From contig JBLDXI010000017.1 of NCBI GenBank assembly GCA_047495785.1, positions 558,001 through 622,000 on the forward strand: a stretch of 64,000 nucleotides of DNA. Direction: 5' to 3'. The notes beneath the pieces are model-generated. The model was given only the letters and a program-made list of their open reading frames with translations, was not told where the DNA came from and did no database searches. This document shows, piece after piece, positions 725 to 35,891 of this stretch (its first letter is position 1; every line of letters starts with the position of its first letter). Source of the DNA: Lepidodermella squamata (taxonomy: Eukaryota > Animalia > Gastrotricha). The position numbers and the translations under genes were made by a program.

Positions 725-3700
725 CAACAAGAACATCACGAAGCAGACGAGAGGAAAAGCGAATATCACGACCCGAACGCGCAATACGTCGGGTTCATTG
801 AAGCGAAACACACGTGCATCGAAAGCTGCGGCGCCTACGTGCTGACAATCGAACGAACCGGCGGCGGCATCGAAGACACCGTCCTAGAGGTCGACTACAC
901 AACCGCCGATGGGACATCGATAGCTGCTAGTGATTATGAAGAAACAAAAGGCACTCTCATCTTCTCATTGGGCCAAAAAACGGCCGAAATTTCTGTCACC
1001 ATCATCGATGACGATGAATTTGAGGAGGATAAGGAATTTTATGTCCGGCTGTCGAATCCTAGGCTGACGTATAGCAAACACCCTGCAGTCACCCTACATG
1101 TCCCTGAGATGAACGGCAAGAAACGGGCGTCTCAGTCTGAAAGTAGGCGGACTTCGTCGAGCTTGAAACCATCGTCCGGTTCAAACAGCCGGCGGCCAAG
1201 TCACGCTCCATTTCCTTTCGTCGGCGAAGACCACGAATATTTCGTCAGCCTTTCAGTACCTGAAGCAACTGTGATGATACTAGACGACGACCACTGCGGC
1301 ATTTTCCACTTTGAAGGCCCCGAATCGGCGATTCCTGATAACATAGGAATCGCGCATATCAAGGTAATTAGGTCAACAGGTGCGAGGGGCCGGGTTAAAG
1401 TCCCGTTCCGGGTCAACCCTGGTACGGCTAAGGAGACGGAGGACTACATCCCGCCAACGGAACAGGAGTTAATTTTCGAAAACAACCAACCCGAAGCGTC
1501 GATTCCGGTTGAAATCGTTGATGCGAATCGGGTCGGCGAGTTGTTTACATTTTTCATCGAATTATTCGACCCGGTTATTATGACGCAACCTCCCGCTAAC
1601 CCGGCTGGCAATCCGTCCCTAGGCGATCCTAAGGTGATAAAACTCGGCATTTGTGAAGACCACGAACTGACCGAGGCCTTGGACCGGTTACTTAAAGTTG
1701 GCGATATGGCTGAGCTTATTTCATCCACAACATGGCTGGACCAGTTTAAGGAGGCGTTTCAAATATCATTCGACAGCGATAATGAAGACGGCAGCGAAGA
1801 TGAGGACGAAGAAACGCCTAGTCGTAGTGAAAACAGCGGAGAAAATGGCAAGAGCAAATGTTCGAAGTGTAGATCTCATTGCGGCAAAGTGAAAACGGTT
1901 CTACTGTGGGCGATTTCGCTGCCGTGGAAGCTGATTGCGGCGGCGTTGCCTCCAGCGCGTTACCTTGGCGGGTGGTTGGCGTTCGTTCTACTTCTTGGCC
2001 TCATGGCGTTGATCGCGGCTGTTATTGGTGACGTTGCTACGCATTTCGGGTAAGGAAAACGCAATTTATTTCCTGTCATTTTTGCGTAACGAAATTTATG
2101 CAAATGACAATTGCGCATTTTTTGATGGTTTTTTTCCCGATTAATCAATGAAATTTCAACATTAGTAATCATTTAGAAAATTGTGAGTATTTAATGAGGC
2201 TCTAATGAACCTTCTAAGATTTCAGGAATTTTTATTATAAATCTCCACAAATTCAAGTGAATTCGTGTAAATTCATTTCTGATTGTAACGAAGCTTAAAA
2301 ATTCGGTTCCAGCGAAAGATTCAGCAAAGAGCATTCATCATTATCTAACTGGATGGTTGCTGATTGCTGACAAAGTTCTTTATTATAGGCGCAATTTATA
2401 ACCGAAATGTTCGATGAGCTCTGTTTTATGGCGATTCGATGGAATTTAAGCTCATCTCTCATCTGATATACATTTTCTCATCCCAATCAATGAAGTTCGA
2501 TTTTTTATATATTTTTCAAATTTTACATCAAATTTCCAGTTATTAAGGAGTGCGCACATACTCTTCATGTAATTTGCCACCAACTGATTTATTTTTTCCT
2601 CGTATGTCATGTTTGGTCGAAGAAGTCACGGAAAAAATGGTCAACTTTGACGGTGCTCGAGGCTCGAACCACGTTCGCCTCTTGAACAGGCCGGGATAAT
2701 AGCAATCGCCACAACATTGAGTCATTACATACGATAAAGAGTCCGATAATTGAGCATTATGAGCCTAACCCATCCTTATTTTCTGGGTCAAATGAGCGAC
2801 TTTGTTCTGATTCCCGACAAGCGTCAGGGCATTTTTTGCCTTATTTATAGCTTAATTTGTCGGTCACGCAATAGGCTCGACGGCGCAGCCATAACTCGAT
2901 ATAATTATCGATGTTTGGGAAATCGTCTCAACGTGCCGCCATCCTTTTTTCCACGACTTGACCAAACAAAAAATGTACATACCTGCTATAAACTTTGGCG
3001 ATTTTTGCAACTTATTTCACTTTTGATCACTAATGATGCCCCCATGAATATACCTGTTTTAGCTAATTGCTACCCTTGGGTGTGTAGGGTATTCTTCATT
3101 TTAAGTTTCCAAGGCTGCCAATATCGGAAAAATCACTGATTCGTAAAATCGATACTTGAAATCGATATCGGCCTGAAGTAAAACTCGTAAATTGACCAAC
3201 GACATCGCAAAATACGCGTAATAGGAAGAGCTAACTGTTAGGCTTCATAAATAATATAGAAGTTCCATATATTAGGGGAAATTAACGGTGAAACCCATAT
3301 TTTTGAGTAAGAGCACCCAATTTTTCCCCCTCGAATTCCGATATTAATAATATGTTTAAACAATATTCCAGCTAAATATTTATCTTATTTATCTCATCTT
3401 AAAACTATGCATTTTTATTCCTTTATAACAGATGTACGGTTGGGATGAAAGACTCGGTGACGGCCGTCACGCTAATCGCCTTCGGCATGGGCCTGCCTGA
3501 TACGTTCGCTAGCCGGCACGCAGCCATGCATGAAAAAACAGCCGACGCAGCCATCGGCCACATCATGGGCTCGAATGCCGTCAACGTGTTCCTCGGCATC
3601 GGCCTCGCCTGGACAGTCGGAGCGTCGTACAAAAAGTTCCACGGCGAGGAGTACGAAGTGCCGCAGGGCAATTTCGGCTTCATCGTCACGGTCTATTGCT

Positions 3701-3876
3701 GTTTCGCCACCGTCGGCGTGTTGGTACTGCTTCTTCGCCGCTTGCCGCCGATTCGAGGCGAGCTGGGCGGGCCTCGCGTTCCTAAGATATTATCAGCGCT
3801 GTTTTTCATTCTTCTCTGGATTGCCTTCATCGTATTAGCCACCCTGCGTAGCTACTGCATAATACCCGGATTTTGA
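725..3876 (+). CDS. Na+/Ca2+ exchanger family protein (SLC8/NCX-like), copy 1; 5' part lies outside the window
   Basis: Exons 725-2049 and 3432-3876. Two Calx-beta domains (IIDDDEFEED, ILDDDHCG, RSTGARG), alpha-2 repeat (GMGLPDTFAS, GSNAVN), C-terminal RGELGGP...YCIIPGF. Confidence 0.93.
3121..3222. repeat. Dispersed repeat family B (aatcactgatt...aaaatcgatacttgaaatcgatatcg)
   Basis: Similar copy at about 14400-14510; inverted copies at about 47930-48045 and 59380-59410. Confidence 0.65.
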
Positions 3877-4783
3877 TCTATGATGTGGAAAAAAAACAGC
3901 TATTTTAGTTTTATTTATTTTATGCTTTTTTCAATTCATGCAATCGACTGAAAATCTGAAAATCAGACGCAATTTCACCTTTCTGAAAAATATCGTACTA
4001 TTTTGTATACTAACAAGATTCGCCTGTTTTCGATGCTTGAGATGAATTTATTTGCATCAAAAACAATAGATTATTATAACTATATTTTTTATGATCCAGA
4101 TTTTAAGAAAAATAAAATCATGGATTTTCTGAAAATTGAGAATTGAATTTGAAGGTTGACAAAACTGGGGATATTCTGCCGCAAATCAGCAAATTCGTAG
4201 CAAGGGCCGATTGACCTAAGCTCGGGTCAATTCTTAATTAATGATGCTGAGGCGTACGATGAGATAATTATATCATTATTTTCTAAAAAATAAAGTCGAT
4301 TTGTTGATGCCAATATTTCTTAGGGCGACTTTTTATCTAGGACAAAATGGCAGCAAAAGGTCAATTATGATTTCGACTAATTACCTGTGTTGATTTATTT
4401 GGTAATATTTCAATTATTACGGTAACGAATTCACGGGACAAAGCTATTAAACGCTTGAATTTTAAATTTTTAATAAATTCCCGTCTAATCAAAAAATTTC
4501 ATAGGCTAAATCACGATTTTTTCGATTTTTTGTAACGCCAACAAGCCCCGAGCGAGTTGCGCGCGCTTCCATAGCAACGCATCGACGCATCGCAACGATG
4601 AGCACCATGTATTATAAAGCCATCAATTTTTCAACGATTACTCCAAATGCCATTAATTTTTAACACCGGCCTTCGGCGCCAAAACTTCACAACAGCAGCA
4701 GGTGAAAAAACACTCAGCGCCCATCACACAAATTTTCTTTGAAATAGTGGGCGAAAAATGGTGTTTGTAGGTTAACAAGTCCG

Positions 4784-7700
4784 ATGGTTCAGAATTACTC
4801 GTATTTAAGCAACAACTCGATGCTGAGTCATGGCGTTAACGTGAGTGAAGTCGATAGCCATGACGATGAGCACTGTTCAGCCGAGGCTCATGACTGCGAA
4901 TCCGGTCTGTTTTTACCTGTATGGTACCCGCAAGGCAACAACCTAGACGCGTGGACTCGAACGTATCGAGCAGCTGTTTACCTGATTTCCCTCGCGTATT
5001 TGCTGTTCGGCATCAATATCATGACAGATCGCATGGTGTCCTGTATCGAGGTCATTATTGCGCAGAAGCGGACGGTCAAATTGAAGACGAAAACGGGCGA
5101 GATTCATACTGTCCAGGTAATTTTATTTCAACGGCAAAACTTATAAGGTCAATAAAAATTCGATTCAAGTTAAACATGTGTCCAAATCCTAATTGGCTCA
5201 TTTTAAATTACAACTCTCGACGAAAGGGTGACATTTCGAGCTATTTTTTTTTAAATACTCCTTTTTCGCCGAAATCTTTGTTCAAAAAATATTGAATTTA
5301 AAAAATTATGAAGTATTGAATTTAATTTAATTTAGTATTATAGGTATTGAATTTTTGATACAACAATGTCTGATTTCTTGTTCGATTTTCTCGAGCGATT
5401 CAGGTCAACAATCATGCATATTAATTCTGAAACTTGGCTTCCTATACTGAAAATCACTGGTTTTTTATTCTATATTCGAAAGAGAAGTGTAGCTTAAAAT
5501 GAAACGACTTACAGATATGGCAAATTTTTCGTAAAATTGAGATAAATCTAGGAAAAATGAATAATCCAAAGGTGAACTTCATATATTGAAAGAAACTAAT
5601 TAAGAAAAATTTAGAGCTGGAACTCAAATTAAGGGGGTGTGCTTAGCTTATCCTTAGCAGTTAACCTGACTGGAAACTACGCAAAGTTAGGATTCGAATT
5701 TTAACTAATTAAAAGGACCTCGGCCGAAGTTACATTTAGACACCCTATCAGATGTGGAATTTTCAAATAAACAAACTATGATCCATTGTCCTGCTTACAA
5801 TTAACTGTAGAAATTAGCGTAACGTGGGCAATAATATAGCGAATCGGGATAACTCACTGCCACGGCTAATTAGGTTACACGTGCGACGGGCGACAACATG
5901 CAAAATGGCAGATTTTTCCGAAAAGAGCGCGTCATAAAGCTAAAAATATGAAAAATTATGACTAATCAGCTTACGCATATACCCAGGCTAATACAACTTA
6001 GCAAAGGACACATTGGGTTTAGGAATGCTTGAGTTAACCATGTAGATAAGTATAAAATGGACGAGAAATTCTAGTTTCGGAAAAAAATAGTCACAGTTCA
6101 ATTTTTTGGAGATTCGTAATTTGACCCGCTGAAAAAATGTCAAGCTGGTTTACAAAATTTGCCGACTGTGTTATCGAAATATCGGTCCGCTTCAAAACGC
6201 GCGAAATCTTCCCCCGGCGAGTTTCTCGATCGTCATCCGAACAAATGCTACGTCGGCGATCGGGGCTTTCACTCAAATCCACCAAGTCCTGTAAATAACG
6301 CGATGGGATTGATACCTTCAAGTTTAAGGAATTGAATAGTTCTATTTCTTCAATAAAACTTGGAAGTTCCAGCTTTGATGAATGAATTTTATCTTATTTG
6401 CTCTAAGGCGCACAATGGAAACAGCTAATAGAATTCTCCGAGTTCATCTCTGAAACTTTGGGTACCTAGCAAAACCAGGTAGCTTTCGAAATTCTACAAG
6501 AATCAGAGAACTCTTCAAAAAGCTTCGAAAGCAGCCCGCATAACTAAAGCGAATTCATTAAAAAAGATTCCAGCTATTGATTATTGGATGTTTCAGTAAT
6601 CAGCTTTCAGTTTTAGCTTCACATCGGTAAATTAGGGCCAAAATTACATTATTCGCTTCTGGAAATTACACACAAATTTCAAGAAAAATTGAAACTATCA
6701 GGGAGAATTGTCGATATTTCCCATATCTTTTCAAATATTTGTCATCAAATTTAAATTTCGGAAAGGATATTCGCACCTAAATAAGGCCTAGCGCCTAGTT
6801 TGGCCGGGCCGGGTACGGTGACGATTATTGCCCACCTAAAGGTTTTTCATGGTTCCTGTCACTTTTTGAGGTCATTTTTGAGGTCATTATTCAAAACACC
6901 AGATTTTCAAATGAATGTGCCGAGAAAAAATTGCAAAAACTTTACCAGAAAAAGTCATATATGACAGCCCCAAGCTGTTCTTAGCTTTCGGTGCGACATA
7001 GGCTCTCAAAAAATGCAGCGGGCTACTCAAATGGGCACGAACTCAACGAAATAGGGCAATCGCGCGAATTATTGATTTGGGGCCCCATTATAACGCACCT
7101 GACTACAGTTTCACTTTTGTGGTTACAATTCGCAGGTTTTGTTTACATAGTGCGCGCACAGGTGACACTTTACATTTTGGCTACGATTTACAGGATTAAG
7201 ACTACGCAATTTATTTTAGCGCTTTTTTAAATTAAATCAAATAAATTACTAAAACCTGGCCTCATAAAGTTTGATGGCATATTCTGGAGTCTCTCCCTAT
7301 TTCATGAAGTTCGATCTAAGGCTAGGGTCCTTTTAGGTTTCGTGAGCTTCCCAACCCTATAATTTCATGTTTTTGCAGGCTAATTTGATTTGGCATCAGC
7401 CTTCTAGATGAGATATGACAGATACAGCGTAACAGATTTATAAAAAAACAAGTAAATTTCAAAATTCCTCTTACATGGCACCACTTGAGTGCTAACCCTC
7501 CAGCCTACCTGGAACCTTTTTTTTTAATTTTTTCCATGTGATAATTTTTGGTGAATAATTGACACAGTTATTTGAAAGTGTTTGAAAATGTTCGATTATG
7601 TCCGTAATTTTTATTAATCTTATTAGGTTCCAATATGGCACCCAGTCGTAGCCACGATGACAGTCTTCGTAATCGGCGCTTCAGCCGCCGAAATTTTCCT

Positions 7701-10700
7701 ACCCAGCCTCGAGTTGATTAAACACCACTTCGAATTCCACGAACTCGGACCCGCGCTGGTTTTCGGCAGCGGTGCCTATCACTTATTCCTAATCACCGGA
7801 CTTTGCCTCGTTTCAGTCAAAGGCTCAATAAGCAAGCCGATACACGATCTGCCTGTCTTCTTCGTCACAACTGGCTTCGCCATTTTCGCCTATCTTTGGA
7901 TGTACATTGTCGCCGAAGTTTTCTCGCCCGATGAAATAACACTGCTAGAGGCGCTAATTACATTAGGCCTATTTCCGGTCCTAGTTATGACGGCTTATTT
8001 CGTCGAAAAGCGACTACACCGTGTCATATGGCGGCGGTTAAGACAATGCTCGAGTGATGTCAGACCTTCGCAAGATCAGGAACATGGGGACGATATAATT
8101 GACGTGTCAAGTGGGACTATGCTTGAGGTGGAGAAGAGGCGGCGGCTGGCTGAGTTGCTGAAGGAATTGAAGGCCGCTCATCCTGAGAAGAGTGAAATTG
8201 AACTCGAAGAAATGGCACAGGTTCACATGTTGGAGAGTGTCCCAAAAGGGGCAGCTTTCTATCGCATGCAGGTGATTTAAATTAACCAGAAATATCCTGA
8301 CATCAACTGACGTTCAATTTTTTTGGAAAACTAGGCTTCAAAGGCTATTTCTGGCGGTGGCAATGTCATTTCAAAGGAGAAAATCAAGAAGAGATTGGTA
8401 AATTTTTTGAATTTGTTCGTGTTTTTTTAACGGAGTGGTTAAGAGGGGTTCTAGTATCTGATAATTAAAAAAATTTTCCCCAAAATATTCTACTTTACTG
8501 AATCAGACTCATACTTCACCTGGTTGGAAAAAAGATTCGACATTGTCCTATTTTCTTTGCAAAGTGCTGATTTTTGTTTGATGTCATCCTTACATTTGGA
8601 CCTTAAGCTTCCGGACCTTTCTGAAAGGTTCCACAGGCTTCATATCACCTAAAAAGCCATCCAATGGAATCGCTTTTTTCCAGCCACGTGAAGTATGAGC
8701 TTTACCCAGCTTCACATGTAGATTATTTTGAGTAAAAAATGGCCGATTATCCGCTACTGCGGAACCCCTTCCAAGTACGAATTACCAAGAGCGCGTACTT
8801 TTTCGTGCGAATATACCAATTCTTTTTTATTTCTTCAATATTTACAAAAGTGTCTCTTATAATTGAAGATTTCTGAATCTTTTACCTTCGCGTGATATAT
8901 TTTAAAACTGAAGATTTTACTTTCTACCTCTGTACCTTCAGATCTAGGGCTACCAAAAAGTCGTGGGCGGTGTACTGCTGTACTTGGGGGCATTATTCAA
9001 ACTTGTCAAGAACGAAAACAATGATATTTTTATGCCTGCAGGAATCGATTTTTGCAAATCGCGCGAGGGTTACTCTGGTAGCTTTGTTAAAAGGAATTTT
9101 CTGATAATTTAATATGCTTAGGTCTAATTGTCTGAAATAAAGACATATTTATGAGTAGGCTACTATTTTCGTAACAATTTCATACACTGCCGCATTAATG
9201 TTCTAAAGTGCGAAATGGGGGCCTAATACGCCAGGGGCATGACAAATCTAGGGGCGAACTTTTTGTTTCGGATCTTCGATGATTCATCATACGTTTTTTA
9301 AGGTGGGGGTTGGTGAGGGGGAGGGGCGAGATTCTTCGTAATTCGGATGAGCGTTCGGGGATTTTCTAAAAAATTCTAAATTGACAATTTTAGGCCGAGA
9401 CTAAGCATGCATACTGGGACTATTGAGATGCAACTCTAGTAAAAGAATCACGTAAGGAACCGTTACAGGTAATGAGAACAAGCTCCTTGACTACCGTTGC
9501 TATGATTTAGCGTGGGTTTCAGTTTTTCGAATTTCGCAGCCTCACCATTGCGTCGGAGGGAAAAGTCACAATAACTGAAGTTTCTTAAATTTTGATGCTC
9601 TATCCGAAAAAATTACTTCGAATGGTTCTGAAAACATGGGTTCGAATTGACATGGAATCCCCACGTGACAATAGGAAAATAAAAGGCTCTCTCAAAACAA
9701 TTCTGGGCTTGAATTAATTCAATTTGAATTGCGTAAAATTGTCTCTTTTGCTGGAACCAGGAAAGTGAACAAAAAGCAAAAGAGGCGTTGGAAAAAGCGA
9801 ATGCAATCAACCCGAACGCGCAATTGGTCGGCTTCGAGCAAACCCATCACTCCTGTATAGAATCTTGCGGCTATTTTGTCCTAACAGTTCGCCGATCCGG
9901 AGCTGGCGTCGATGATACTTACCTAACAGTCGACTACGAAACCGAGGCAGTAACAGCTATAGCAGATTCAGACTATGAAGAAACAAGCGGAACCTTAGAA
10001 TTCAAACCAGGCGTCCTAACAGCTGATATTATGGTGAAAATTCTAGACGACGACGAATTCGAGGAAGATAAGGACTTCAAAGTCGTCTTGAAAAACGCTG
10101 AATACAAACTACGAGAAAAAATGGCACCGCTTAATTTAGTCATCGAAGGCGTGGTTTTCGATCACAAAGAGGCGACCGTCCGAATTCTGGACGACGATCA
10201 CTGCGGCGTGTTCCACTTCGATTCCGCTGATTTAGCCGTGCCAGATAACATTGGGACAGCTAAGCTGAAGGTAGTTCGATCAACTGGCGCTAGGGGTCGC
10301 ATTTTGGTGCCGTACAGGGTGAAAGACGGGTCGGCTCATGAAGGGCGCGACTTCAAGGCGCCGGCTGTTCGTGAAATTGCCTTCGAAAACGACCAGCCTG
10401 AGGCCTATATCGAGATAGGAATTGAAGATTCGCAGCGAATCGGGGAGATTTTCACGTTTTCTATCGAGCTGGATGAGCCGAAAATTTTGACCCAACCGCC
10501 TCAAAATCCGGATGGTAATCCGCGGCTGGGCGAGCCGAGAAAAATCAAAGTCGGAATTTGCGAAAACAATGAACTGTCCGAAGCGCTCGATCGCCTTCTT
10601 AATTTAGGTAAATTAACTCCAGAAAAAAATCAAATTATTGTGGCTGAAAGATGATAGCTGAATTCGCTAAACGTCATTTTTTTAATTTTATCAAATTCTT

Positions 10701-11747
10701 TGAAATTTTTTGAAATTTTTGAATTTTCGAAAAATATTGAAATTTAAATTGCCAATGGATTTATTTTAATTTAATTAATCAATCAATTTCTAATTATATT
10801 TCTTGAATATTTTTTTAATTATATTTTTCTACAGGTGACATTGCTGATCTAATTTCCTCAACAAGCTGGCTCGATCAGTTCAAAGAAGCCGTAACTGTGC
10901 AATCAGGAGGCGATTCCGAAGGTGAGCATGATGAGGATGAGGACGATGATCACGCGTCCGTATCGACCGACCTTCACCACCATGACGAGTCTTCGAAATC
11001 ATGCCACTGTTGTTCTAATTTTCAAAAATATTTCCTATTCGCGATTTCTCTACCTTGGAAGCTATTAGCAGCCTGTATACCGCCGCCTGGTATCCTCCAC
11101 GGTTGGCTGGCTTTCCTACTCCTCCTCGTTGTAATGGCCTGTTTGTCGGCTCTAGTCGGCGATTTAGCCTCGGCCTTTGGCTGTACAGTTGGGTTGAAAG
11201 ACACTGTGACAGCGATAACGCTGATTTCACTCGGCATGGGTCTGCCGGATACTTTTGCGAGTCGACATGCAGCCATGCATGAAAAATCGGCAGATGCAGC
11301 TATTGGCCATATAACAGGGTCTAATGCCGTCAATATGTACCTTGGCATTGGCCTATCATGGACTGTTGGGGCTGCCTATCACGCTTATAAAGGCGAAAAA
11401 TTCAAGGTAGGTCGCCGTGAAAAAATTTTCAAAAATTTCAAAAAAATTTTAATTGCACATTTCCATAAATAATCTATCTTAATATTTATGATTTTATTAA
11501 TTTTTGTTTTTCCTATATAATTTAGCTTCATCGCAACATTAACCTTGGCTTTATCGTTGCGATCTATTGCAGTCTAGCAAGTGGAGCTATTCTAGTGCTT
11601 CTGCTGCGCCGATTGCCGCCGGTTAGAGGCGAACTCGGCGGGCCTCGAGTCGTCAAAATTCTATCCGCCCTCTTCTTCGCCGCCCTTTGGATCTCATTCA
11701 TAGCCGTGCTGTGCCTTCAGTCCTACTGCGTAATCGACGGATTCTAA
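4784..11747 (+). CDS. Na+/Ca2+ exchanger family protein (SLC8/NCX-like), copy 2
   Basis: Exons 4784-5116, 7627-8271, 8335-8397, 9761-10607, 10835-11406, 11526-11747 join in frame with GT-AG boundaries. Motifs GLFLPVW, alpha-1 GASAAE, AFYRMQA, two Calx-beta domains, alpha-2 GMGLPD. Start codon uncertain. Confidence 0.93.
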
Positions 11748-12764
11748 AGCGGGAAACACCTATACACTTTTAATTATTATTACTGTTATTTTTCTGAAGA
11801 AATAAACTTGAAGTAATAAAATTGTCCTAGTTTTTTCATTGTTTTTTTTGGTACTGGGCAAAATCAAGTGCTGTGCCGGTGAGCGTGAGAGTGCGCGGAA
11901 ATCGGAAACACATTGGAAAGTCTACAAATTACACGAAAAAAATCACGCGTCTGCATCAGTACTATGGGGTTCGTTTATATAGTTACCCAGAGGAAATAAT
12001 CGCTGAGTGCGTGATTCATAGCCGCTAATATTATCGTGTCAAAACTCAATCGATATCCCAATTTAAGACAATTTAAAAAAAATATATATATAGGATTTTC
12101 AATTAATTTTATTCCTAATCATATGACTCATGGCTGCGAAAATTTCCATAGCGACTGGTTGTAGTATTAATTTAATAAGAACTACTGTGCAGTATATATT
12201 TTAACCGGAAGTTTCAAGCATGCTACTTGGTTTATCGAATTTTTCATAACGTAAAATATTATATAGACGTCTGGATTTTATTACACTTTTTCACCTCCCT
12301 CCCATGTACTTGCGAAGCGCAGTCATAATATCCTGAATACTGCTTTTTTCCCGCATTTGAATTCCGAAAATACAGGTAATTTTATCGTCAGCGTCTAAAT
12401 CTGCGAATTCCGTGATCTGTCAATTCCTTCCCTTGATTGCCCTCCGCGGCATCGTTCCATAGAAAAAGTTGCCCGAGGCTATTTGCCTAGCTGCACCTAC
12501 AACCTATTCGCAATGCGTAGCTGAATAATTATCGAAGAACAGTCCTAATCATAATATAGGAAAAATCCCCATGGTTACGCCAACATTTTCAGGTAAAGTT
12601 ATTCACTCCTAAGCTTAAACCCAGGTGATATATTTCGAATTTTTAGGCTGAAAGCTGATTGCTGATTTTTTCTATAGATTTATTTTCGAAAATTTGTTAA
12701 TTAATTTTCTCCATTTGAAGATGATTTTCTTTGGGCTGAAAAACAACCCACCGTGATCTATCTG

Positions 12765-15700
12765 ATGTCAATAGCTGAAATAGCAGAGGAAACAACAGCT
12801 GATTTCATACTAAGCAGCTCTACATCGTACTCACCGTTGGCATCAACGCTTTTTAATTCTGGATTGAATTTATCACTAATAACAACAACTGCATTATCAT
12901 CGAATTTACTACACCGAGGCAATAGTTCGTTGAATTCAACCGCTGTTGAACACTGTGGCGGTCACGGTCACGTGTGCGCCAATGGCATTTTATTACCAGC
13001 TTGGTTGCCGCCGGTTGCTGAAGGCGACATTGGAGGCATCCTCCTTAGAGCAATAATTTACCTGTCCAGCATGCTTTACGTGCTATTTGGCGTCAATATC
13101 GTATCGGATCGCATGGTGTCGGCTATTGAGGTCATCGTGGCGCAAAAACGCAAGAGAAAGGTCAAAAATTCACGAGGCCAGGAAACAGTCGTCGAGGAAC
13201 CAATTTGGCACCAAGTCGTCGGTAAATAAAAATTGAATATTCAACATTTTAAAATTCAAAATTTAAATTAATATTGAAATTTCTAAATTTTAGTCTATAT
13301 TTTATTCAATTTTTGTTGAGAATTTTTGCTGATTTTTTTTTAAACTTGATTATTATATTAACACATCAATTTTAAAATTGTCCTCCTTAATTTTTTATTA
13401 ACGATTTTCTGATGATTTTTCGATTTTTTAGGAATCAATTTTGACGCGTTTGATCGGTTTAATGTGTTGTCCATTTCTAGGTCACTTGACGGTATACGTT
13501 ATCGGCTCTTCGGCGCCCGAGATTTTTCTTCCCCTAATCGAAGTCGCCCGGCACCATTTCGAAATCGACGAATTAGGCCCGGCGTTAATTCTAGGCAGTG
13601 GCGCCTACCATCTATTCTTCATAACCGGCGTTTGTCTCGGCAGCGTCCGCGAAAATACCGGCAAGCCAATTCGAGAACAGCGCGTATTTTTCGTCGCAAC
13701 AGCCTTTGCGATTTTCGCATATTTATGGCTGTATTTAATTTCGAAAGAAATCTCACCTGGAATTATTGAAATCTGGGAGGCCTTGCTGACATTCGCGTTC
13801 TTCCCTCTCATCGTGTTTTCAGCGTGGTTTGCGGAGAGAAGGATGCATAGGGTGATTTATAAGCGGCTCATGCGGCTAAAAGGCGGTGGTGTTTCGCCTG
13901 CTGGTGACGGGCAAAACGGCCATGGCGATGATTTCGATCAGTTGAGTGGCGACGTGGCGGAGAGTGAGCGGCGGCGGAGGTTAGGTGCTATGCTGAAAGA
14001 GCTCAAAGCGGCGAATCCTACCAAGTCTCAACTGGAGTTGGAAGGGATGGCCGAGTTGGCGCTGCTCGAGTCGGCGCCGAAAGGAGCGGCCTTCTACCGG
14101 ATGCAGGCTTCTAAAGCCATGTCAGGCGGTGGAGCTGTTATATCGAAGGAGAAAATCAAAAAGCGCTTGGTTAGTTGATAAATCGGAAGTCCTAGAATTT
14201 TTTATTAAATTTTAGATTATTAGACCGCAATATTGCGTCATAGCACTAATAATAGAGAGTCGTATCACTAAATTTTTTAATTGTTAGAATATCGAATTCT
14301 GATCGATACTTATGTCCTCCATAACCCTGGGACTTATTTTTATTAGCTAACTGGTACTCGAGTATAGAAGATTCAAGTTTTGGACTGTCGAAAAAATTCG
14401 GGATATCGGAAAAATCACTGATTTATAAAATCGATACTTGAAATCGATATCGACTCTGTAAGCCGAACTATAACTCATAAACTGGCCACCGATAGCGCAA
14501 AATATGCCTGAGATTGAGATGTATTCTCTTATTTTCAGGAAAAGGAGCAAAAAGAGAGGAATCACCATGAAAAAGGCGAAGTCGTGAATCCATATGCTCA
14601 ATATATCACATTCGAACCCGCCTATTACACGGTTATGGAGAGCGTAGGCGACGCTATGGTCACGGTCCACCGAGCAGGCTGTGGCGTTGATTGGACCGTT
14701 CTAACCCTAGATTACCGAACACTCGAAGGGTCGGCTAAATTTGTCGATGATTTCATCGAAAAATCCGGTCAACTCGAATTCGCGCCCGAACAAACCACGG
14801 CCGACATTTTCGTCACGGTCATTGACGATGATGAATTCGAGGAGGATAAGGAATTTTTCGTCGAAATTTCGAATCCTCAGGTCAAGTATAAGAAACCGCC
14901 GCCTAAACCCGCGACTAATAAGGTGTTCACGCAAAATGGAGCTGGAGGGGCGAAATCGCATCACCAGAACGGTCATGGAGGTTTACATCACCAGAATGGC
15001 CACGCTTCATTGCCGATTGAGGACAATGCCGATCATAGTAAGGACCCGGTGGCGCCTGTTATACAGGCTGCAAGGGCGACGGTGAAAATTCTCGACGACG
15101 ATCACTGCGGTGTCTTCCACTTCGAAAATTCTGATCGTAAGTTGAGAATTTGTAACCAGATCTTATTCCACTATTTATTCCAATTTTTCTCACCACAGCG
15201 AAAAATAAGCCAAAGGAAATTGAAAGTATAAAAAAATATTTCTTCATTTTAAACATTTTTTAAATGCTTGTATTTTTACTAACTAGAGCTTACTTGCTTT
15301 TTCTATCTATTTCGAGTCTTAAATAAATGAATCGCCTAGCATTAGAGTAGCTATAGCGTGTCCCAGAAGTTGCGCAACTTTTTGTAGGAAATTCAACTAA
15401 TTTTTTTAAAATTGAGCCTACCGAGATAAACGTTTCATCTTTAAACCGCGATATAACCGAAGAAATAAAACATTTACCGGAGAAAACCCGGAAAACCCCG
15501 ATGGTAACAGGTTCGGTAATTTTCGGTATTTACCCGGTTGGACCAAATTTTTCCGGACTTTTTCATCAGTGACTTACTTGGTTACTATTCTCGTGATTTT
15601 TTTAATTTTTCTAACATTTTTCTGGCCATGAGATGTGGCTTCGTCTCTCTTTTTAGAGTTTCTGAACCCTTTTCCGTCTATTTTCTTTGCTAGCGTTACT

Positions 15701-18700
15701 TATGGGACACGCTGTAATAGATAATAATTACTTAGGTAAATACTATCGCCTATATATAAAGGATAGATCTAGATTAGCCAGTAAACCGCATATGTATAAT
15801 ATATGGGATGTAAATTTGTAAAGATCGAAAAGATCAAAAAGGTCTTTTCGATTTCTTCTCAAACCCAACCAATACTCCATGTGCTCTAATATTTTCCGCT
15901 TTTGCATTCCTGCTATCAACTTTTTCCGCTGAAAAATTTCCGCCAGCATCATTTTCCGCTATATCGTCTCTTCCGCCAAGTGATTTTTCGCCAAATTCTT
16001 TCCTGCCGCGAGGCATTTTCGCTGAGGTGGCAGTTTCCGCCAAGAGGAGTTCCGTCTATTATGGGCCTGCCCGTAAATAGGGTTCCATCACTAATTTGAG
16101 GTTCAAGATTTCCTCGAAACGGGATGTTTGAAGTTTAGTCTACCTAAGCTTTTCTGTCATCAAAATCTAAACATGGATCGGACTAAGCATATTTTGAGCC
16201 TGCTGATCCGATGCCGATTTTACTAATCAGTGATGAGCTGTTTTGGGAGATAACATCGAGAATTATTCTGGAATCTTGAGGGTATGTATCAGGTAGCTAA
16301 GTTGAATTGATAAATATTCTAACAGTTGTGTGTGGAAATCCTAAAATTATAAAGGAAATAATTTTGCTATTTTCCGAAGCTGAAAAAATCGTACTATAGA
16401 TCAGAAAATGTCCCGCCTAACAGGGGCGAAAGTTAAGATTTCAGGCGTTGGATGGCATGCACTTTCTTGTAGATTACTTGAAGATTACTTGCAGCCTCAT
16501 CGAATATACTTACACCTGTACTGAATGTTTGTAGATACTCTGGAATACAATTCTTTCTGGGGGCCTGCCAACAAATGTAAGCCATGTAAAAAAATGTGCA
16601 GCTGGGTCACTTTTTCATGGTTGCTCGTGATGATCCAATTTTTTTCACAATTTTAATCATAATATTGTAGAAAATATCTCACTAATAAATTTATTTTAGT
16701 AATTTTAGTTGATCGATTATTTGTCACGTAGCAACCATGAAAAATAACAAATCGGCTGCCGTGGCTGTTCCATCCTTAAATTTTTTCAGCTCACAGTTTG
16801 AAAAATAAATTTAATAATTAGTTCAATTTTAACCAATTTTATCATTTTTTATTATTCCTAGTGCCTCTTCCTGACAATATTGGCGTCGGCAAAATTAAGG
16901 TCGTCAGGTCAACGGGTGCTCGCGGGCGCATCGAGGTGCCCTTCCGGGTGATGGACGGCTCCGCAACAGCCGGAAACGACTTCATCCCACCTCCTTACAA
17001 TTCCGTAATCTTCGAAAACGACCAATTCGAAGCTTTTATTGAGATTAAAATCGTCGACAAAAATCGCATCGGTGAAATGTTTTCGTTTTCAATCGAATTA
17101 GGCGAGCCGAACATTTTATCAAAACCCCCCGAAAATTCGGATGGCAATCCGATCTTAAGCGACCCGACGCGGGTTAAAGTCGGAATTTGCGAAGACATCG
17201 AGCTAAACGCGGCGCTGGATCGGTTGCTCAAAGTTGCCGATATTGCTGAGCTGATTTCATCGACAACATGGGCCGATCAATTTAGGGAGGCTGTTTCGTT
17301 CAGCAGCGGCGCCGATGAGACGCCCGAGTCACCCGAGGGTGACGTTGTGGGTGAGAACGGCGAGATTATTCAGACCTATACGACAGTTCGGCATAAAACC
17401 ATGCAGGCGAAGTGCAAGTCTTTCTTCAACATGGCTAAACGGTGTTTCATTTACGGCATTTCGTTACCCTGGAAATTACTAGCGGCATGTGTCCCTCCGG
17501 CGAGGTATCTTCACGGTTGGGTGGCTTTCCTGCTCCTACTCGCGCTCATGGCTCTGTTGTCCTCAATAATTGGCGATTTGGCGACACATTTTGGGTAAGG
17601 AAAAATGTATTTTTGGGCACGTTGATTGAAATTTTCAGGTTTTTTGCGTAAAATTCTCGTATCATCAGCTTTTGTTTGACATTAAATTCGAGGTTATTGG
17701 GCAAAAATCGATTTTCGGAAAAATTAGCTGGCATTGTACTCCGGATATAATATCATGACCTCCTCCCTTTTACCGCTAATTGCCTTTTAGTCGACCTAGT
17801 TTTGAAGTTGCCAAAAATCAGGTTAATTTAGGAAAATTCTTAAAATCCTCAAAAAAAATTCAGGAAAAAAACCTAGCTGGATATTATCGATTTCCTATAA
17901 TTAAACTTATTGCGAGCATCTTCTATCCTTCAACCTCAATTTCACCGAAGAAATAAACATTTAATCAAAGAAAACCGGGAAAAACCCGATAGTAGCTGCG
18001 GTTCGGTATATTTCGGTATTCTACCTGGTTGGAATAAATTTCTCGGATTTTTTTTTAATTCTATTGCCCAGTTTTGATACATAATTGCCCTTCTCATGGC
18101 ATATGGACGTTTTCTGGCCTTGAGATGACCTTTTTACACTTTTCGGTGTATTTCCTTAGTTGCCTTATGGGACACCCTGTACAAGCTCTAATTTTCGATT
18201 AATTTCTTATTTATCTGTAATTTCTAGGTGTACAGTTGGACTTCCAGATACGGTGACAGCCGTGACGCTGATTGCTTTCGGCATGGGTCTTCCAGATACT
18301 TTCGCGAGTCGGCACGCCGCCATGCATGAAATGACAGCCGACGCTGCGATTGGCCATATCACCGGCTCCAACGCCGTAAACGTATTTTTCGGCATCGGCA
18401 TGGCCTGGTCTACTGCTGCTATCTATCACTGGTCGACATCAACTAAGCTACATGTGAGTTGTGCGCGAAAAATCACAAAGATCACTAATAATAGTCAACA
18501 CCAATCCATGCAAAACGGTCAAAAAGATTTTTTCTGACGTTCTTGGAGACATATAATGTTTTGACGGCCTCAATTTTCTGATTCGTCTGATGTATGGCCT
18601 AAATACACTTTTCTGGGATACCGGAAATCGCATTCGGACGCAATCGACAATTTTTTATGTTGACCTTGTTCGTTTTATGAACGTTTACCCTCTCATTTTT

Positions 18701-18980
18701 AAGAAATTAAGATTAATCAAAAATTGTGATTTTTCAATTTCTTTTTTTTTTTAATTTTAAGATGCCGGCTGAAAGTTTTGGCTTTGGCGTCACGCTCTAC
18801 TGCGCATTCGGCGCAGCCGGTGTACTGGTGCTACTACTGCGGCGATTGCCGCCGATACGCGGAGAACTTGGCGGCCCTACCGTTGTCAAGTACCTGTCGG
18901 CCGCCTTCTTCATACTCCTCTGGGTTACATTCGTAACATTGGTCACGCTGGAAAGCTATTGCGTTATCCAAGGCTTCTAA
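12765..18980 (+). CDS. Na+/Ca2+ exchanger family protein (SLC8/NCX-like), copy 3
   Basis: Exons 12765-13221, 13481-14169, 14539-15136, 16862-17594, 18228-18453, 18762-18980 join in frame. Alpha-1 GSSAPE, two Calx-beta domains, alpha-2 GMGLPD. Confidence 0.93.
15354..15714. mobile_element. Tc1/mariner-type MITE, family A, in an NCX copy 3 intron
   Basis: TA|tagcgtgtccca ... tgggacacgctg|TA terminal inverted repeat. Internal core ggttcggtaattttcggtatt is shared with about 17945-18180, 20081-20425 and 47745-47873. Confidence 0.75.
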
Positions 18981-19393: not shown

Positions 19394-21489
19394 TCAAATT
19401 GTGGTAACTCTTAGGGTTGAATCGTCCTCATCAGTTGGGACATAAGGGGGCAGGGCCATGAGCCGCTGTCCCTCCTTAATCGCCTCGACTCGCGCAGCTC
19501 GGCGCTGTCCCTCCGCCTTGATACGCTGCAAATCGGCTTCTTTCGGCAGTATTTTATCAATATGATTCAGCATGCCCTTCGTGAATTCATTCTGGTCAAT
19601 GCCATTGCTGCCGTTTTTATCGAACCGATGGAACATTTCGTCGATTTCCTGATTCGAAACCTTCTCGCCAATGCTCATCATCACCATTTTTATCTCCTTC
19701 TGCTCGATACGACCGTCGCCTGTTACGTCCAGCAGCTTGAATAGGCCGATCATGAGAGTCCGCCGATCGGATGGGTCCTTCCACCGATCGAGCCAGTCGA
19801 GTCTGAAGTCTTCAAATGTGACAGTTCCGTCGTCTTTAACATAAATGCATTTTACTAAATTTAAATGTTTTGATTTAGGAAGAAGTTACCGTCGCGATCG
19901 ACCCGCTTGAACAGGCGCCTTAGCTCCTTCGGCTTATAGGTAAGTCCGAGACCCATGATCAATCGATGCTAATAAAGGGTAGTTGAACAATCGGTTTTAT
20001 AATATATTGAAATAAATACTAATGAATGTCATAAGTTTTAGCGGAACCGAATTTGCCTGTTGCGGAACCTAATTTTAATACAGCGTATCCCATAAGTAAC
20101 GCGTAACGCAAACAAATACGCAAAAGGGATCAAAAACTCTAAAATGAGAGGGGGAGTCATTGCCAGAGGAATCTTGAATAATCGAAAATGCCAAAACAAT
20201 AGTAATCTAGGATGTCTCTTTTGAATGGGATTAAAAACATCCAAAGAAATTTGATCCTACCATGTAAAACCGAAAATTACCGAACCAGTTACCACCAGGG
20301 TTTTCTCCGGTAAATTTTAAATTTCTTCGGTAAAATCGTGGACAGTTGGGTTTAAATTCAAAAAATGTCCTTAATCAATTTGCGAAATTAAACAAATGGT
20401 TGCGCGCAATTGATAGGACACGCTGTATACTGGAAGCGAAACCAAATTTTGAATTTCTCCGAATGCATCTTTTCAGGAAATTTGCGATCAATTTAACAAA
20501 ATCAACATAAATTACCATAAAATTCTGCATAAATTTTAACAATAAGGCCTGAGCATCACCCGAAGAACGCAGCTTAATCATGATTTCATAAAAAAAATTC
20601 GAAAAATGACACTTTTTCCATTTTCCAATTTTTGTGCCAATTTGAGACATTCGCTCCGCTACCAGCTAGACCATGAAGGTCCACGTACACCCCCAATTTT
20701 ATGGTTCCAGCTCTGATTTTTCAATCTTCACGTTTTCCTTCGATTCACTCTCGAATCGTTGTCATGTCTAACCGATAGTTAAACATAGCAAATAATTATT
20801 GCATAGCGGATTGCGATATAAGAAGAGCAAATTTCAAGAATCGATCAGTATCGATCAGTGAATCAGTGATTTTTGCGATGTCAACGTTGAAATGATAAAT
20901 TCTACATTTAGTTTTGATGATTCCATAAATTTAAAATAAAAAATCACAGGATAATGGGGAAGCATTGGAAAATGTTGGATTATTAGCGCTGGAACCTCAA
21001 TTTTAGTGGTGCAGATATTTCGCCCCATTAGTTGAAGTAATATTAGTCAGTTAATTTAAAAAATGAAGGAATAATTTAAATTTTAATTAATTTAAATTTT
21101 ATTAATTTTTCGAATTATACCAGTTCAGCAATGTCGACGTAGCCGTCCTGGTTGCGATCCACAGTTTCATACATTTGATGAAAAGCCGCTTCACTGCGAT
21201 TTCTCGCCTTAATCTCCTGCCGCTGTTGAGGGCTCAGTTCCTCGCCGTTCGGCCCCACCGGCCGGCGTCGTAGATGCCGCGTCAGGTAGCTGGAAACAGC
21301 GCCCCAACTCGGAGCAGCCGACGCCGATGATTTGCCGCTCGTGAAACTTCTCGGACCGCCCTTTCGCAGAATCCCGGGCGAGGCGAGGAGGAAATCAGCA
21401 GCACCCTGATCTGTGCTCGATTTCCCCTGCTCGGCATCACTATCCGCAGCTTTATCACCACCGCTTAGCCAACTACGTAAACTCGCCAT
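19394..21489 (-). CDS. Calmodulin-like four-EF-hand Ca2+-binding protein with a long N-terminal extension
   Basis: Exons 21489-21121, 19968-19890, 19833-19394. EF loops DRNQDGYVDIAE, DRDDDGTVTFED, DVTGDGRIEQKE, DKNGSNGIDQNE. Confidence 0.88.
20081..20425. mobile_element. MITE family A copy in the EF-hand gene intron
   Basis: TA|cagcgtatcc ... ggacacgctg|TA; same core as 15354-15714 in inverted orientation. Confidence 0.75.
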
Positions 21490-21948: not shown

Positions 21949-22498
21949 ATGAGTTCAATTGAATTAATTTTAACATTTCTGTCGATTTCTGCGACCTGCG
22001 TGTTCTCAGGTAATTATTACGCTTGAGTGATTTCATTAAGGTGGATTTTTTTATTTCTCAATAGGCGTGATAAAAGGCGCCACTGAGCCGCGGTGTTTTG
22101 AAGAAGTGCCAGCATCCCTGCCTGGTACTTGCGAGGCCTACTTACCCGATGTTTACTTCGACCGCACCCTTAACAAGTGCATTCAGTACATGTGGGGCGG
22201 GTGCGGCGAGGGCGGCAAAGGGTTCCGCAGCTTGGATGAGTGCCGCACCGCGTGCGCGCCATTTGCTGCGCAACGCGAGGCTGAAATGGGGCGGTTTAAA
22301 TCGAAAAACGCGATGTGTAACCAGCCGGCTGAAACCGGGCCATGCAAGGCCTATTTTCCGTCTTACTATTTTGACATGCAGAGCGGCCACTGTCTGCAAT
22401 TCGTCTACGGCGGGTGTTTAGGCAACACGAATCGATTTACGAGCCAGGATGATTGCCAGAAAAATTGCATCGAATCAACGGCGTTTGAATCAGCTTGA
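21949..22498 (+). CDS. Secreted two-domain Kunitz/BPTI protease inhibitor (K1)
   Basis: Signal-peptide exon 21949-22009 plus exon 22065-22498. Domain 2 is canonical: CNQPAETGPCKAYFP...FVYGGCLGNTNRF (P1 Lys). Confidence 0.9.
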
Positions 22499-33307: not shown

Positions 33308-35891
33308 TTAAGTCTTTGAGGATAGTCGCGGCCGAGGGGGTGATCGTCCGAAAAACGGCGCCAAAATCTGAATTAGAACATTTTGATTCAAAATTCTATC
33401 GCTCAATCAAATCAACTAACTTTGACCAAATAAATTAAGAAAATATTCAGGTAGCAATACGCCAGGGTGACTAGAGACACTGTTACGTGTACAGCATCTT
33501 TAGGCCATTGAACAGCGATGATCAAAACTCCGCCAGCTATTGTCACAGTTCCTATTGAAATGAAAGTAACTGCTGCCTTCAACTCATCGATTTTGTCAGC
33601 ATTCGTTCGATATCTTGCTCCAGCTTTGCATTTCTTAATACAAAAATTCATCATTAAAAATCGTAATTTTAAGGGTTAAAATCACCAGGCGGAGATCATA
33701 GCCTTTAAAACAAGCTGAAATAACTGCTAGCGTGTGAAAACTCAAAACTGCGAAGAGCAAGGCCATAGCATTGAAAATTTTGTAGTTCACGCGACATTCC
33801 AATTGATAGGGTTGATAGGCGGTTGAAGAATCCTCGGAATAGTAACGCGACAACTCAACCAAGCCAACTTCATTCAAGCCACCAATAGCGAGGAAACCAA
33901 CCACCAAAGCGATGTGTAGACTGATCCAAGTTCCAATGATTGCCATTGAATAAAAATTACGAAAACCATTGGCGTTCGATAGAATTCGAGATCCTTTGTC
34001 AAGCTTAGCGAACAACCCGGAGATGAAGCAAGCGAACCCTACGCTTATTAGGAAAGTCGAGGCTGAACAGTGGTAAGAAACACTGGAAAGTGTAGCCTCC
34101 GACATTGGCACAACTACCGGCCCGTAGCAGCACATTAAAACATTTCCTAATAGGCTCATTGAGTTTTCCGCTTTAAAAGCGGAATTTCCCTGGATATTCC
34201 AAATGAGCAACGCAACTGAAGACAAAGCAGCAACAACGGATAACGCTGAAAGAGAATTATACAAATTGTCAATCATGAAGCTGAAGTTGGGAACTGACTA
34301 ACCAAAGATCGTCCAGTAGATTGGATCACTCATTTGACTAACAAAAAATGCGATTATTTCAACGGAATCCTTAGGCGGTGATGTAGAGCCTCCATTCCAT
34401 TTCGGTCCTTTTTCGATCAAGTAGAAAGACCTATCTCCAGATCTAAAGTACGCAACGAAAACTTGTTTGGGGTTCAAGCTCTTTTCATTATTTAGCTGCA
34501 TTTGTGAAAACGCTATTGGAACGTATCCTAAGGTGTTGAGGGTGGTCTTTCGGTCAAAGTGATAAATACCCCGAAAGCCATTGACCTCCAGAGAGTAAAT
34601 TGCATCTTTCATCAATTCTGCGAAAAATCTGCTGTTCTGGCGAAATTTCTGTGAGCTTGTGGTCCAATCCATTAGGGTTGAGTTAAGCCTTTGCTTCAAA
34701 AGCTTCTCCGCCTGTTCGACAACAAATCCGGCGAATATTGTAATGCCATAGCAATCTGAGGGCCAAATCGAAAGTCCTGGCGCGTTTTTAACGCCATATA
34801 TTTTGGCATCGAGAGCTGTGGAGAATTCGGCAGCTGTTAGACCACCGCTGTCCCGGTAGTCCGGGCCGAAAAGGGTTGTCATTTCCATGAATGAAAAGTA
34901 GAGCCATCCTTGGATCGCTTCTCTCAGCATCCTCCTAGTACACCAAGATCTGACATAAGCTGGAATTTCGACAGTTTCAGGGTCGATTATGATCCAATCA
35001 CTTGCGAAGATGACGTAGCCGGTTCCGAACATGCCGTAGTAGTGAAGCCAGCATGCTAAACTAGCCGGAGAATCTGTGTTTGCTAGAATCACCCTGGGCT
35101 CCGTTTTGTGCATAGCATTGACGGCCGCTGACATCTCAGCCGCATCTTCCGACATGAAAGTTACCTTCCCCAACCAAATAACGCTGATGTTCATACTGCT
35201 CAACACTGGGAGCATGTATTTTTCCTGATCGTTGAAATAGGCGAGGTCTTCGGAGAATATGGCGAGACGTTGCCATCCGTAATGGCGCATGAAATGAGCG
35301 ACAGCATCGCAGGTGAATAGCGGAGATGGGTAGAGCTGGAAAACAGCGTCAAATCGTTTTCGGTTCTTCAAGACGGCCTCATTTTGAAAGAAAAGCGTCA
35401 GCCCGGTGATGTTGAGCTGCTTTATGGACTGGGCGACGACAGACTGACCTTGGGTCGAGCACCAACCGGAAATTACCAAGGGGATTCGGGTTTCATTGGC
35501 GTTATGAACTAACTCTCGAACGGTTTCAGATATAGCTACCGCGTCATCGCACTACATAGATGATAGCTTCATCGAAGGTCAAACTTGCTGTAGAAGAATT
35601 CCTTACCTGGTCATCGATTATCTCGATTTGAAGGTCGTAGTTTTGAAGCCACCGCTTCTCAGCCTGGAGAGTTTTAAAGCGATCCAGGGCGATTTCCATG
35701 CCTTTAGTGCACAACGGACCCACTCCGTAGCTTTGTCCCCCATAGTTGACATGAGCCAGCAGCGTTACAACTTGTTTCTTGGAAGGATTCAATTCGCTTT
35801 TAACAAATCGATCCAAGCTAGCGTTTAGATAAACCATTTCGCCTGCTGCGAAGGCTGTTAGGAACGGCAAAAGGATGAGCATTTTTCTCAT
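33308..35891 (-). CDS. Class C GPCR, GABA-B-receptor-like, copy A
   Basis: Exons 35891-35607, 35551-34303, 34245-33686, 33633-33421, 33367-33308. Signal peptide, Venus-flytrap domain (DDQC, LKNRKRF..FQLYPS, HYGWQRLA), PPKD linker, seven hydrophobic segments, no Cys-rich domain. Confidence 0.85.

Follow-up and report, generated by a model that had tools for sequence, protein, structure and literature searches.

Whether an exchanger of the NCX family whose sodium-binding residues have been replaced still exchanges three Na+ for one Ca2+ is the question raised by a gene array of the gastrotrich Lepidodermella squamata. The array occupies positions 725-18980 (+) of a 64,000-nucleotide stretch of contig JBLDXI010000017.1, which was analysed as a whole and is referred to here as the window; it is an intron-containing animal locus with three head-to-tail genes of the SLC8/NCX type (copies 1, 2 and 3). 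Few residues in animal transporters are as strongly conserved as the 12 ion ligands of NCX, and the basis of the 3:1 Na+/Ca2+ stoichiometry is still debated from the mutants of one archaeal protein. A sequence-only reading of this DNA had noticed GMGLPD in all three copies, GSGAYH in two and GASAAE in copy 2, and had taken the loss of two hydroxyl ligands, the change of one Asn into His and the retention of the acidic ligands as signs of a selected, lineage-specific clade with another counter-ion or stoichiometry. The analysis described below indicates that the genes are expressed-looking members of a lineage-restricted SLC8/NCX offshoot; they are a real, intact, selected and rare NCX variant with a rebuilt ion pocket.

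Family membership and the ion-binding pocket

The gene models (Table 1) were obtained from a list of the open reading frames and a Pfam scan of the window, from junctions read in three frames and from tblastn with an intron-poor homolog; the query for exon 1 of copy 2 was P0012, a canonical NCX. All 11 introns are GT-AG and no internal stop is present in the three models. Copies 2 and 3 encode 893 and 973 amino acids, respectively, and copy 1 is represented by its C-terminal 589 amino acids, its 5' exons lying upstream of the window. A six-frame motif scan of the whole window located GMGLPD at 3484-3501, 11233-11250 and 18280-18297 (+), GSGAYH at 7765-7782 (copy 2) and 13594-13611 (copy 3) (+), and GSNAVN at 3568-3585, 11317-11334 and 18364-18381 (+). 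The alpha-1 repeat has GASAAE at 7675-7692 in copy 2 and GSSAPE at 13504-13521 in copy 3 (both +), and no further occurrence of these five motifs was found in any frame of the window. The scan agrees with the sequence-only reading in the number and in the positions of the variant motifs.

PF01699 (Na_Ca_ex) was found in each half of copies 2 and 3, and copy 1 has it in its C-terminal half; PF03160 (Calx-beta) was matched in two stretches and PF16494 (Na_Ca_ex_C) was also matched by the open reading frames of the window. The NCX architecture is whole, with 10 transmembrane (TM) helices, two alpha repeats, an XIP-like segment and two Calx-beta domains. Comparison with human NCX1 structures by phmmer gave E=1e-45 to 1e-47, and in the alignments to 8sgi, 8jp0 and the archaeal NCX_Mj, GMGLPD corresponds column for column to GTSVPD/GTSLPE, and GSGAYH to GSAAFN. 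Among the Protein Data Bank (PDB) chains, those of NCLX were matched by phmmer only at E about 5e-3. The CCX/NCLX motifs GNGAPD and (G/S)(N/D)SxGD differ from those of the window copies, in which two Calx-beta domains are present; the GNxxE(H) motifs of CAX were absent in the six-frame scan, and no CAX chain appeared among the PDB matches. Hence, the proposed motif correspondence with NCX1 and NCX_Mj is borne out, and membership of NCLX or CAX is not. The three genes are members of the SLC8/NCX family (CaCA superfamily), although the signature of that family, GSSAPE...GSAAFN plus GTS(V/I/L)PD...GSNAVN, with ASSESNATSDSN at the 12 ligand sites, is not preserved in them, and the three motif sites are homologous copies rather than chance matches. 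The acidic clusters of CBD1 (DDDEFEED and LDDDHCG) and the basic XIP-like segment are kept, which fits continued Ca2+ handling and Ca2+ regulation. P0012 was also tried as a bridge for placing the Ca2+-site residues of the CBDs in NCX1 numbering; this was dropped, as P0012 proved to be a nematode protein whose loop is numbered differently.

The 12 ligand positions were defined on NCX_Mj (A47, T50, S51, E54, S77, N81, A206, T209, S210, E213, S236 and D240), and NCX1 residue numbers were assigned by a mapping anchored on the alpha-repeat motifs. The three window copies were aligned at these positions with 69 retrieved proteins, 64 of which are full-length canonical NCX. The canonical string was present in 55 of the 64, most of the remaining rows being minor variants or gaps. 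Copy 2 has VASESHSMGDSN and copy 3 has VSSESHAMGDSN at the same positions: the side-chain ligands T209, S210 and N81 are replaced in both, and the equivalent of T50 also differs in copy 2. This is the pattern that had been described beforehand, with two hydroxyl ligands lost, one Asn turned into His and the acidic Glu and Asp kept.

The ion sites of NCX_Mj consist of A206, T209, S210, E54 and S77 (Sext), of A47, T50, S51, E213 and S236 (Sint), of E54 and E213 with the backbone carbonyls of T50 and T209 (SCa), and of E54, N81, E213 and D240 (Smid), where the present view places a water molecule (PMC5133943). In the window copies two of the five oxygen ligands of Sext are lost, T209 being replaced by Met and S210 by Gly, and the Smid Asn (equivalent to N81, NCX1 N143) is His in copies 2 and 3. 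The SCa site (TM2 Glu, TM7 Asp and the backbone carbonyls) and Sint are intact. Of the columns with a conservation of 90% or more in canonical NCX, 22 are replaced across the clade to which the window copies belong, including T135L, N143H, T810M, S811G and N834H. The first of these affects the N73 equivalent, a Thr in canonical NCX that is Leu in every clade member having the region; N73 of NCX_Mj hydrogen-bonds to T209 (PMC4753433). The N232 equivalent is the position that is His in the window copies as N834H, and N96H, A140G and F142Y are further clade-wide changes with respect to canonical NCX; like T135L and N834H, they had escaped the sequence-only reading. Around Sext, polar residues are jointly replaced by hydrophobic ones, and up to three Asn have become His.

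Rarity, descent and selection of the variant

The alpha-2 exon of copy 1 was used to search 1.84 billion cluster representatives exhaustively with HMMER, which returned 4007 matches. Among the best 150 of them, the variant motifs were present in the top four only: P0001 (GMGLPD and GSGAYH), P0002 (GTGLPD and GSGAYH), P0003 (GMGLPD) and P0004 (GMSLPD, GSGAYH and GASTAE), all from ENA metagenome assemblies. The variant motif was found in none of about 60 canonical NCX representatives and in none of the named proteins retrieved, and it is thus not common. Protein searches by word index, run with P0004 and with a profile of the clade, gave named matches that were all canonical; only 8000 candidates were scored, and known members of the clade such as P0002 were missed. 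Given both limits, these blanks are weak, and the claim of rarity rests on the exhaustive search of representatives. A look-up in the ESM Atlas returned canonical NCX clusters only, which says little, since that resource holds clusters of at least 50 members. Full-text literature searches for GMGLPD and for the NCX1 residue names N143, T810 and S811 found no paper; the published consensus of NCX and NCKX is G(S/G)SAPE and GTS(I/V/L)PD (PMC4232491). The variant signature is restricted to one clade, formed by the window copies and the genes of one metagenomic animal. Separately, P0115 (Caenorhabditis auriculariae, CAD6198497.1), a nematode NCX paralog outside that clade, shows an independent change of Thr to Met at the T209 position (GMSFPD, in TVGMSFPD) together with GTAAFN and GANCAN.

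Maximum-likelihood trees were built in a quick form, with the SH-like approximate likelihood ratio test (SH-aLRT), and in a careful form, with SH-aLRT and bootstrap, and were rerun without the four motif blocks. The variant clade consists of the window copies, P0001-P0004, P0154 and two more genes of contig L001. The quick trees support it at 100 (SH-aLRT) and the careful tree at 100/100; its stem measures 0.62-0.66 substitutions per site, and the clade was unchanged when the motif blocks were left out. The distinct, lineage-restricted clade that had been postulated is therefore recovered independently of the motif columns. All members from outside the window come from one metagenomic animal, as judged by shared samples and contigs; several of them have Ser or Thr in place of D240. 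P0004 is the sister of copy 2 (support 100/99), so the split of copy 2 from copies 1 and 3 predates that of the two animals.

In the metagenomic animal, contig L001 carries four variant genes in tandem, adjoining a trypsin-sushi gene and a nuclear-receptor gene. On L004/L006 the two variant-clade genes of P0002 and P0154 lie directly alongside a canonical NCX gene (L006:1256-6900), which encodes GSSAPE, GSAAYN, GTSLPD, GSNAVN and a signal peptide. This adjacency suggests that the variant clade was born by tandem duplication of the lineage's own NCX, of which the tree is no proof: the clade is nested among bilaterian NCX, in a weakly supported group (69/90) that also contains the canonical protein of L006 and the NCX of the rotifer Seison nebaliae. 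The L006 protein as exclusive sister of the clade had 98 SH-aLRT in the quick tree and was recovered in only 32% of the careful-tree bootstraps, and that relationship is not claimed.

The window copies share 56-59% amino-acid identity pairwise. Among them, nonsynonymous divergence (dN) is 0.35-0.40 and synonymous divergence (dS) 2.1-4.7, which is saturated; the NG86 ratio of the two (omega) is 0.08-0.18, about 0.1, a rough figure on account of the saturated dS. The codons of the motifs differ synonymously only (GGC/GGT, CTG/CTT, CCT/CCG/CCA, CAC/CAT and TAT/TAC). Together, the low omega and the synonymous differences argue for purifying selection rather than decay, as the sequence-only reading had supposed from a change shared by diverged, intact paralogs. 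Decay or relaxed selection is ruled out by the intact reading frames and the omega of about 0.1, and recent gene conversion by the saturated dS; the window paralogs are old.

These data also bear on the possibility that transport was lost, the proteins acting as sensors, regulators or dominant-negative partners of the canonical exchanger, or the genes decaying. Gene C of L001 (6822-9321) would fit, since both acidic Ca2+ ligands are lost in it, with TM2 Glu changed to Gln and TM7 Asp to Gly (alpha-1 PATSSQT, alpha-2 GLCLPG) in a gene that looks intact in all other respects; its product may be a derivative that no longer transports. The helix-breaking alpha-1 proline, kept by copy 3 in GSSAPE, is missing from copy 2 (GASAAE) and from its ortholog P0004 (GASTAE), and the P53C mutant of NCX_Mj has about 3% of activity left. 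However, the three window copies keep both acidic ligands, they are intact at the identity and omega given above, and the pocket residues are conserved above the protein average within the clade. We consider loss of transport in the window copies very improbable.

There is modest evidence that copy 3 is transcribed and spliced, from contigs of a sequencing run (X2) that is probably RNA, an identity guessed by the tool. The listed pieces fall on copy-3 exons only. One of them matches exactly from the predicted acceptor 16862 onwards, and the 21 letters ahead of this point are unmatched, as they would be in a spliced transcript. Most intron bins had no X2 depth; of the 30 depth bins, with the two of high-copy repeats left out, two had none over exon sequence either. 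At the junction of exons 1 and 2 the match ends 3-4 nucleotides short on both sides, which is attributed to strain differences, many X2 contigs being only 90-95% alike.

Possible consequences for transport

With two of the five Sext ligands gone, an altered counter-ion or stoichiometry in the window copies can reasonably be inferred. The reading that we favour, somewhat above even, is that the window proteins still carry Ca2+ by alternating access and that the coupling is altered. The acidic pair, SCa and Sint are retained, and Sext is dismantled by the changes of Thr to Met, of Ser to Gly and of the T209 partner Thr to Leu. Two forms of altered coupling can be envisaged. In the first, two Na+ would be exchanged per Ca2+ in place of three: if Sext is gone, only Sint and SCa would be left for Na+, two ions at most, and electroneutral exchange is proposed on that ground. 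In the second, a proton on the new Smid His, which lies beside the carboxylates, would take part. NCLX is the precedent for relaxed or altered counter-ion use in a CaCA member that keeps SCa: it is a non-selective cation/Ca2+ exchanger without the Na+-site serines and the Smid Asn (PMC13483046), and an NCLX_Mj chimera is electroneutral and voltage-insensitive (PMC8366772).

Several observations weigh against altered coupling. The S210A and N81A mutants of NCX_Mj differ little from wild type, and T209A still has 10-25% of kcat/Km (PMC4753433), so that loss of the side chains is no proof of lost Na+/Ca2+ exchange, and the substitutions could merely tune kinetics. One Sext hydroxyl is kept by P0002 (GTGLPD) and another by P0004 (GMSLPD), and the loss of Sext is thus not uniform in the clade. 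The same NCX_Mj mutants speak for ordinary 3Na+:1Ca2+ exchangers, in which the substitutions would affect only rate, affinity or regulation and the copies would be numerous because of tissue-specific expression; the retained acidic ligands, the S51, S77 and S236 equivalents, the XIP-like segment and the CBD1 acidic clusters would also be expected of them. Nevertheless, the canonical signature is nearly invariant across animal NCX (the 55 of 64 proteins mentioned above) and in the published consensus (PMC4232491), which implies that exactly these residues are strongly constrained. Unlike Ala, which truncates the side chain, Met is bulky; the T209 partner has become Leu throughout the clade; the clade has a long stem; and the related metagenomic animal retains a canonical NCX beside its variants. 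We therefore hold that the window genes are unlikely to encode ordinary exchangers.

The entry of Met and His into the pocket raises a further possibility, namely that the proteins transport a divalent metal other than Ca2+ (Zn2+, Mn2+, Cd2+ or Fe2+), or exchange such a metal for Ca2+ or H+, the Met thioether, the His imidazole and Glu/Asp forming a softer site. In NRAMP, a Met in the site favours transition metals over Ca2+, and the preference would be in line with such a role. His makes up 3.1-3.7% of the window copies vs 1.7+/-0.5% of canonical NCX, an enrichment of about twofold, and His-rich stretches are present at the N-terminus, in a CBD1 insert and before TM6; they include one insert, HHQNGHGGLHHQNGH, within the Calx-beta 1 region of copy 3 and another, DLHHHDESSKSCHCC, that immediately precedes TM6 in copy 2 (10835-11406). 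In the clade members of the metagenomic animal, by contrast, the His fraction is 1.2-2.2%, without enrichment. Met is not universal either, P0002 keeping Thr, and the Ca2+-coordinating geometry is conserved together with the Ca2+-sensing motifs of CBD1. A metal carrier is, for these reasons, an improbable reading. A broader version, in which the clade would be an NCX-derived transporter with a wholly changed substrate or driving ion (for instance H+-coupled, or a Zn2+/Mn2+ exchanger with a His/Met/Glu/Asp pocket), amplified in large tandem arrays while an ordinary NCX was retained, is also regarded as quite unlikely.

The array belongs to a natural, old and selected family in which one Na+ site is dismantled and a His stands at Smid, the Ca2+ site and the regulatory domains having stayed, and in a related animal an unmodified NCX of the parent type sits beside the variants. 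These genes are suited to asking what the outer Na+ site gives to coupling, electrogenicity and ion choice.

Gene models, neighbouring sequences and known exchangers

Table 1. Exons of the three exchanger genes, with the evidence for each model
Feature	Position	Strand	Evidence
Copy 1, first exon in the window: both Calx-beta domains and TM6	725..2049	+	acceptor AG 723-724, donor GTAAGG at 2050; Pfam Calx-beta E=8.7e-40
Copy 1, last exon: alpha-2 (TM7-TM10) to stop	3432..3876	+	NCX1 8sgi residues 806-948, E=1.6e-45
Copy 2, exon 1: N-terminus with His/Cys-rich stretch, TM1	4784..5116	+	ATG 4784, donor GTAATT at 5117; tblastn with P0012
Copy 2, exon 2: alpha-1 (TM2-TM5) and XIP-like region	7627..8271	+	Pfam, motif scan, gene model
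Copy 2, exon 3: 21-codon mini-exon after a 63-nucleotide intron	8335..8397	+	tblastn, junction reading, gene model
Copy 2, exon 4: both Calx-beta domains	9761..10607	+	Pfam Calx-beta E=2.5e-41
Copy 2, exon 5: His/Cys-rich loop, TM6, alpha-2	10835..11406	+	Pfam, motif scan, junction reading
Copy 2, exon 6: TM9-TM10 and stop	11526..11747	+	junction reading, gene model
Copy 3, exon 1: N-terminus with EHCGGHGHVC, TM1	12765..13221	+	junction reading; X2 contigs at 13090-13218
Copy 3, exon 2: alpha-1 and XIP-like region	13481..14169	+	NCX1 8jp0 residues 134-382, E=5.6e-47
Copy 3, exon 3: Calx-beta 1 with His-rich insert HHQNGHGGLHHQNGH	14539..15136	+	junction reading, gene model
Copy 3, exon 4: Calx-beta 2 and TM6	16862..17594	+	Pfam, gene model; X2 contig match starts at 16862
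Copy 3, exon 5: alpha-2	18228..18453	+	Pfam, motif scan, gene model
Copy 3, exon 6: TM9-TM10 and stop	18762..18980	+	gene model; X2 contig at 18902-18990

The mini-exon of copy 2 encodes ASKAISGGGNVISKEKIKKRL; its counterpart in copy 3 is continuous with the preceding exon. The introns of copy 3 contain very high-copy repeats (window 14400-14600 and 15200-15800) with many joints and loose ends. In the DNA run X1, summed contig depth was about 1,600 to 48,000 in the repeat bins of these introns vs about 44-117 elsewhere, and the repeats are probably small mobile elements similar to miniature inverted-repeat transposable elements. Directly downstream of the array, an EF-hand pair protein is encoded at 19394-19753 (-). 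Other features of the window are an open reading frame at 22067-22498 (+), two stretches of which match the Kunitz/BPTI profile, two adjacent genes resembling class C G-protein-coupled receptors (33635-35479 and 41946-43867, both -), each with an ANF_receptor ligand-binding reading frame followed by a 7tm_3 reading frame, and a reading frame with a Cys-loop receptor ligand-binding domain at 52339-53268 (+).

Among known systems, the plant exchanger MHX (Mg2+,Zn2+/H+) is comparable in that it is NCX-derived and its substrate was shifted by few substitutions near alpha-1 (PMC3679957). Unlike the window copies, MHX has Gln at the equivalent of NCX1 E113, Thr810 and Ser811 are almost completely conserved in it, and it is without the Calx-beta pair; its changes are unrelated to those described here. 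NCLX (SLC8B1, CCX) has in its alpha-1 motif GNGAPD a Gly at the serine position, which mirrors GMGLPD in alpha-2 of the window copies. It belongs, however, to another family, without Calx-beta domains and with the motifs GNGAPD and GNSxGD, and its changes affect the inner site (S51G, S236G), S77 and N81V, whereas in the window copies the outer site is changed and N81 is replaced by His. With NCX_Mj (Methanocaldococcus jannaschii; PDB 3v5u) the window copies have the alpha-repeat core in common. The archaeal protein is without the regulatory loop. In the window copies Met, Gly and His stand in place of its T209, S210 and N81, and Asp and Asn in place of its E213 and D240, the latter two being found in all eukaryotic NCX. 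The animal NCX1-3 (SLC8A1-3; human NCX1 8sgi and 8jp0) have the same domain order, with about 35% full-length identity, the same Glu/Asp pair and the same TM8 GSNAVN, and the alpha-1 GSSAPE is shared by copy 3. In contrast to them, GTS(V/L/I)PD is replaced by GMGLPD and GSAAFN by GSGAYH in the window copies, along with T135L, N834H, N96H, A140G and F142Y, and the variant genes are organized in tandem multi-gene arrays, whereas NCX1-3 are encoded by one to three dispersed genes.

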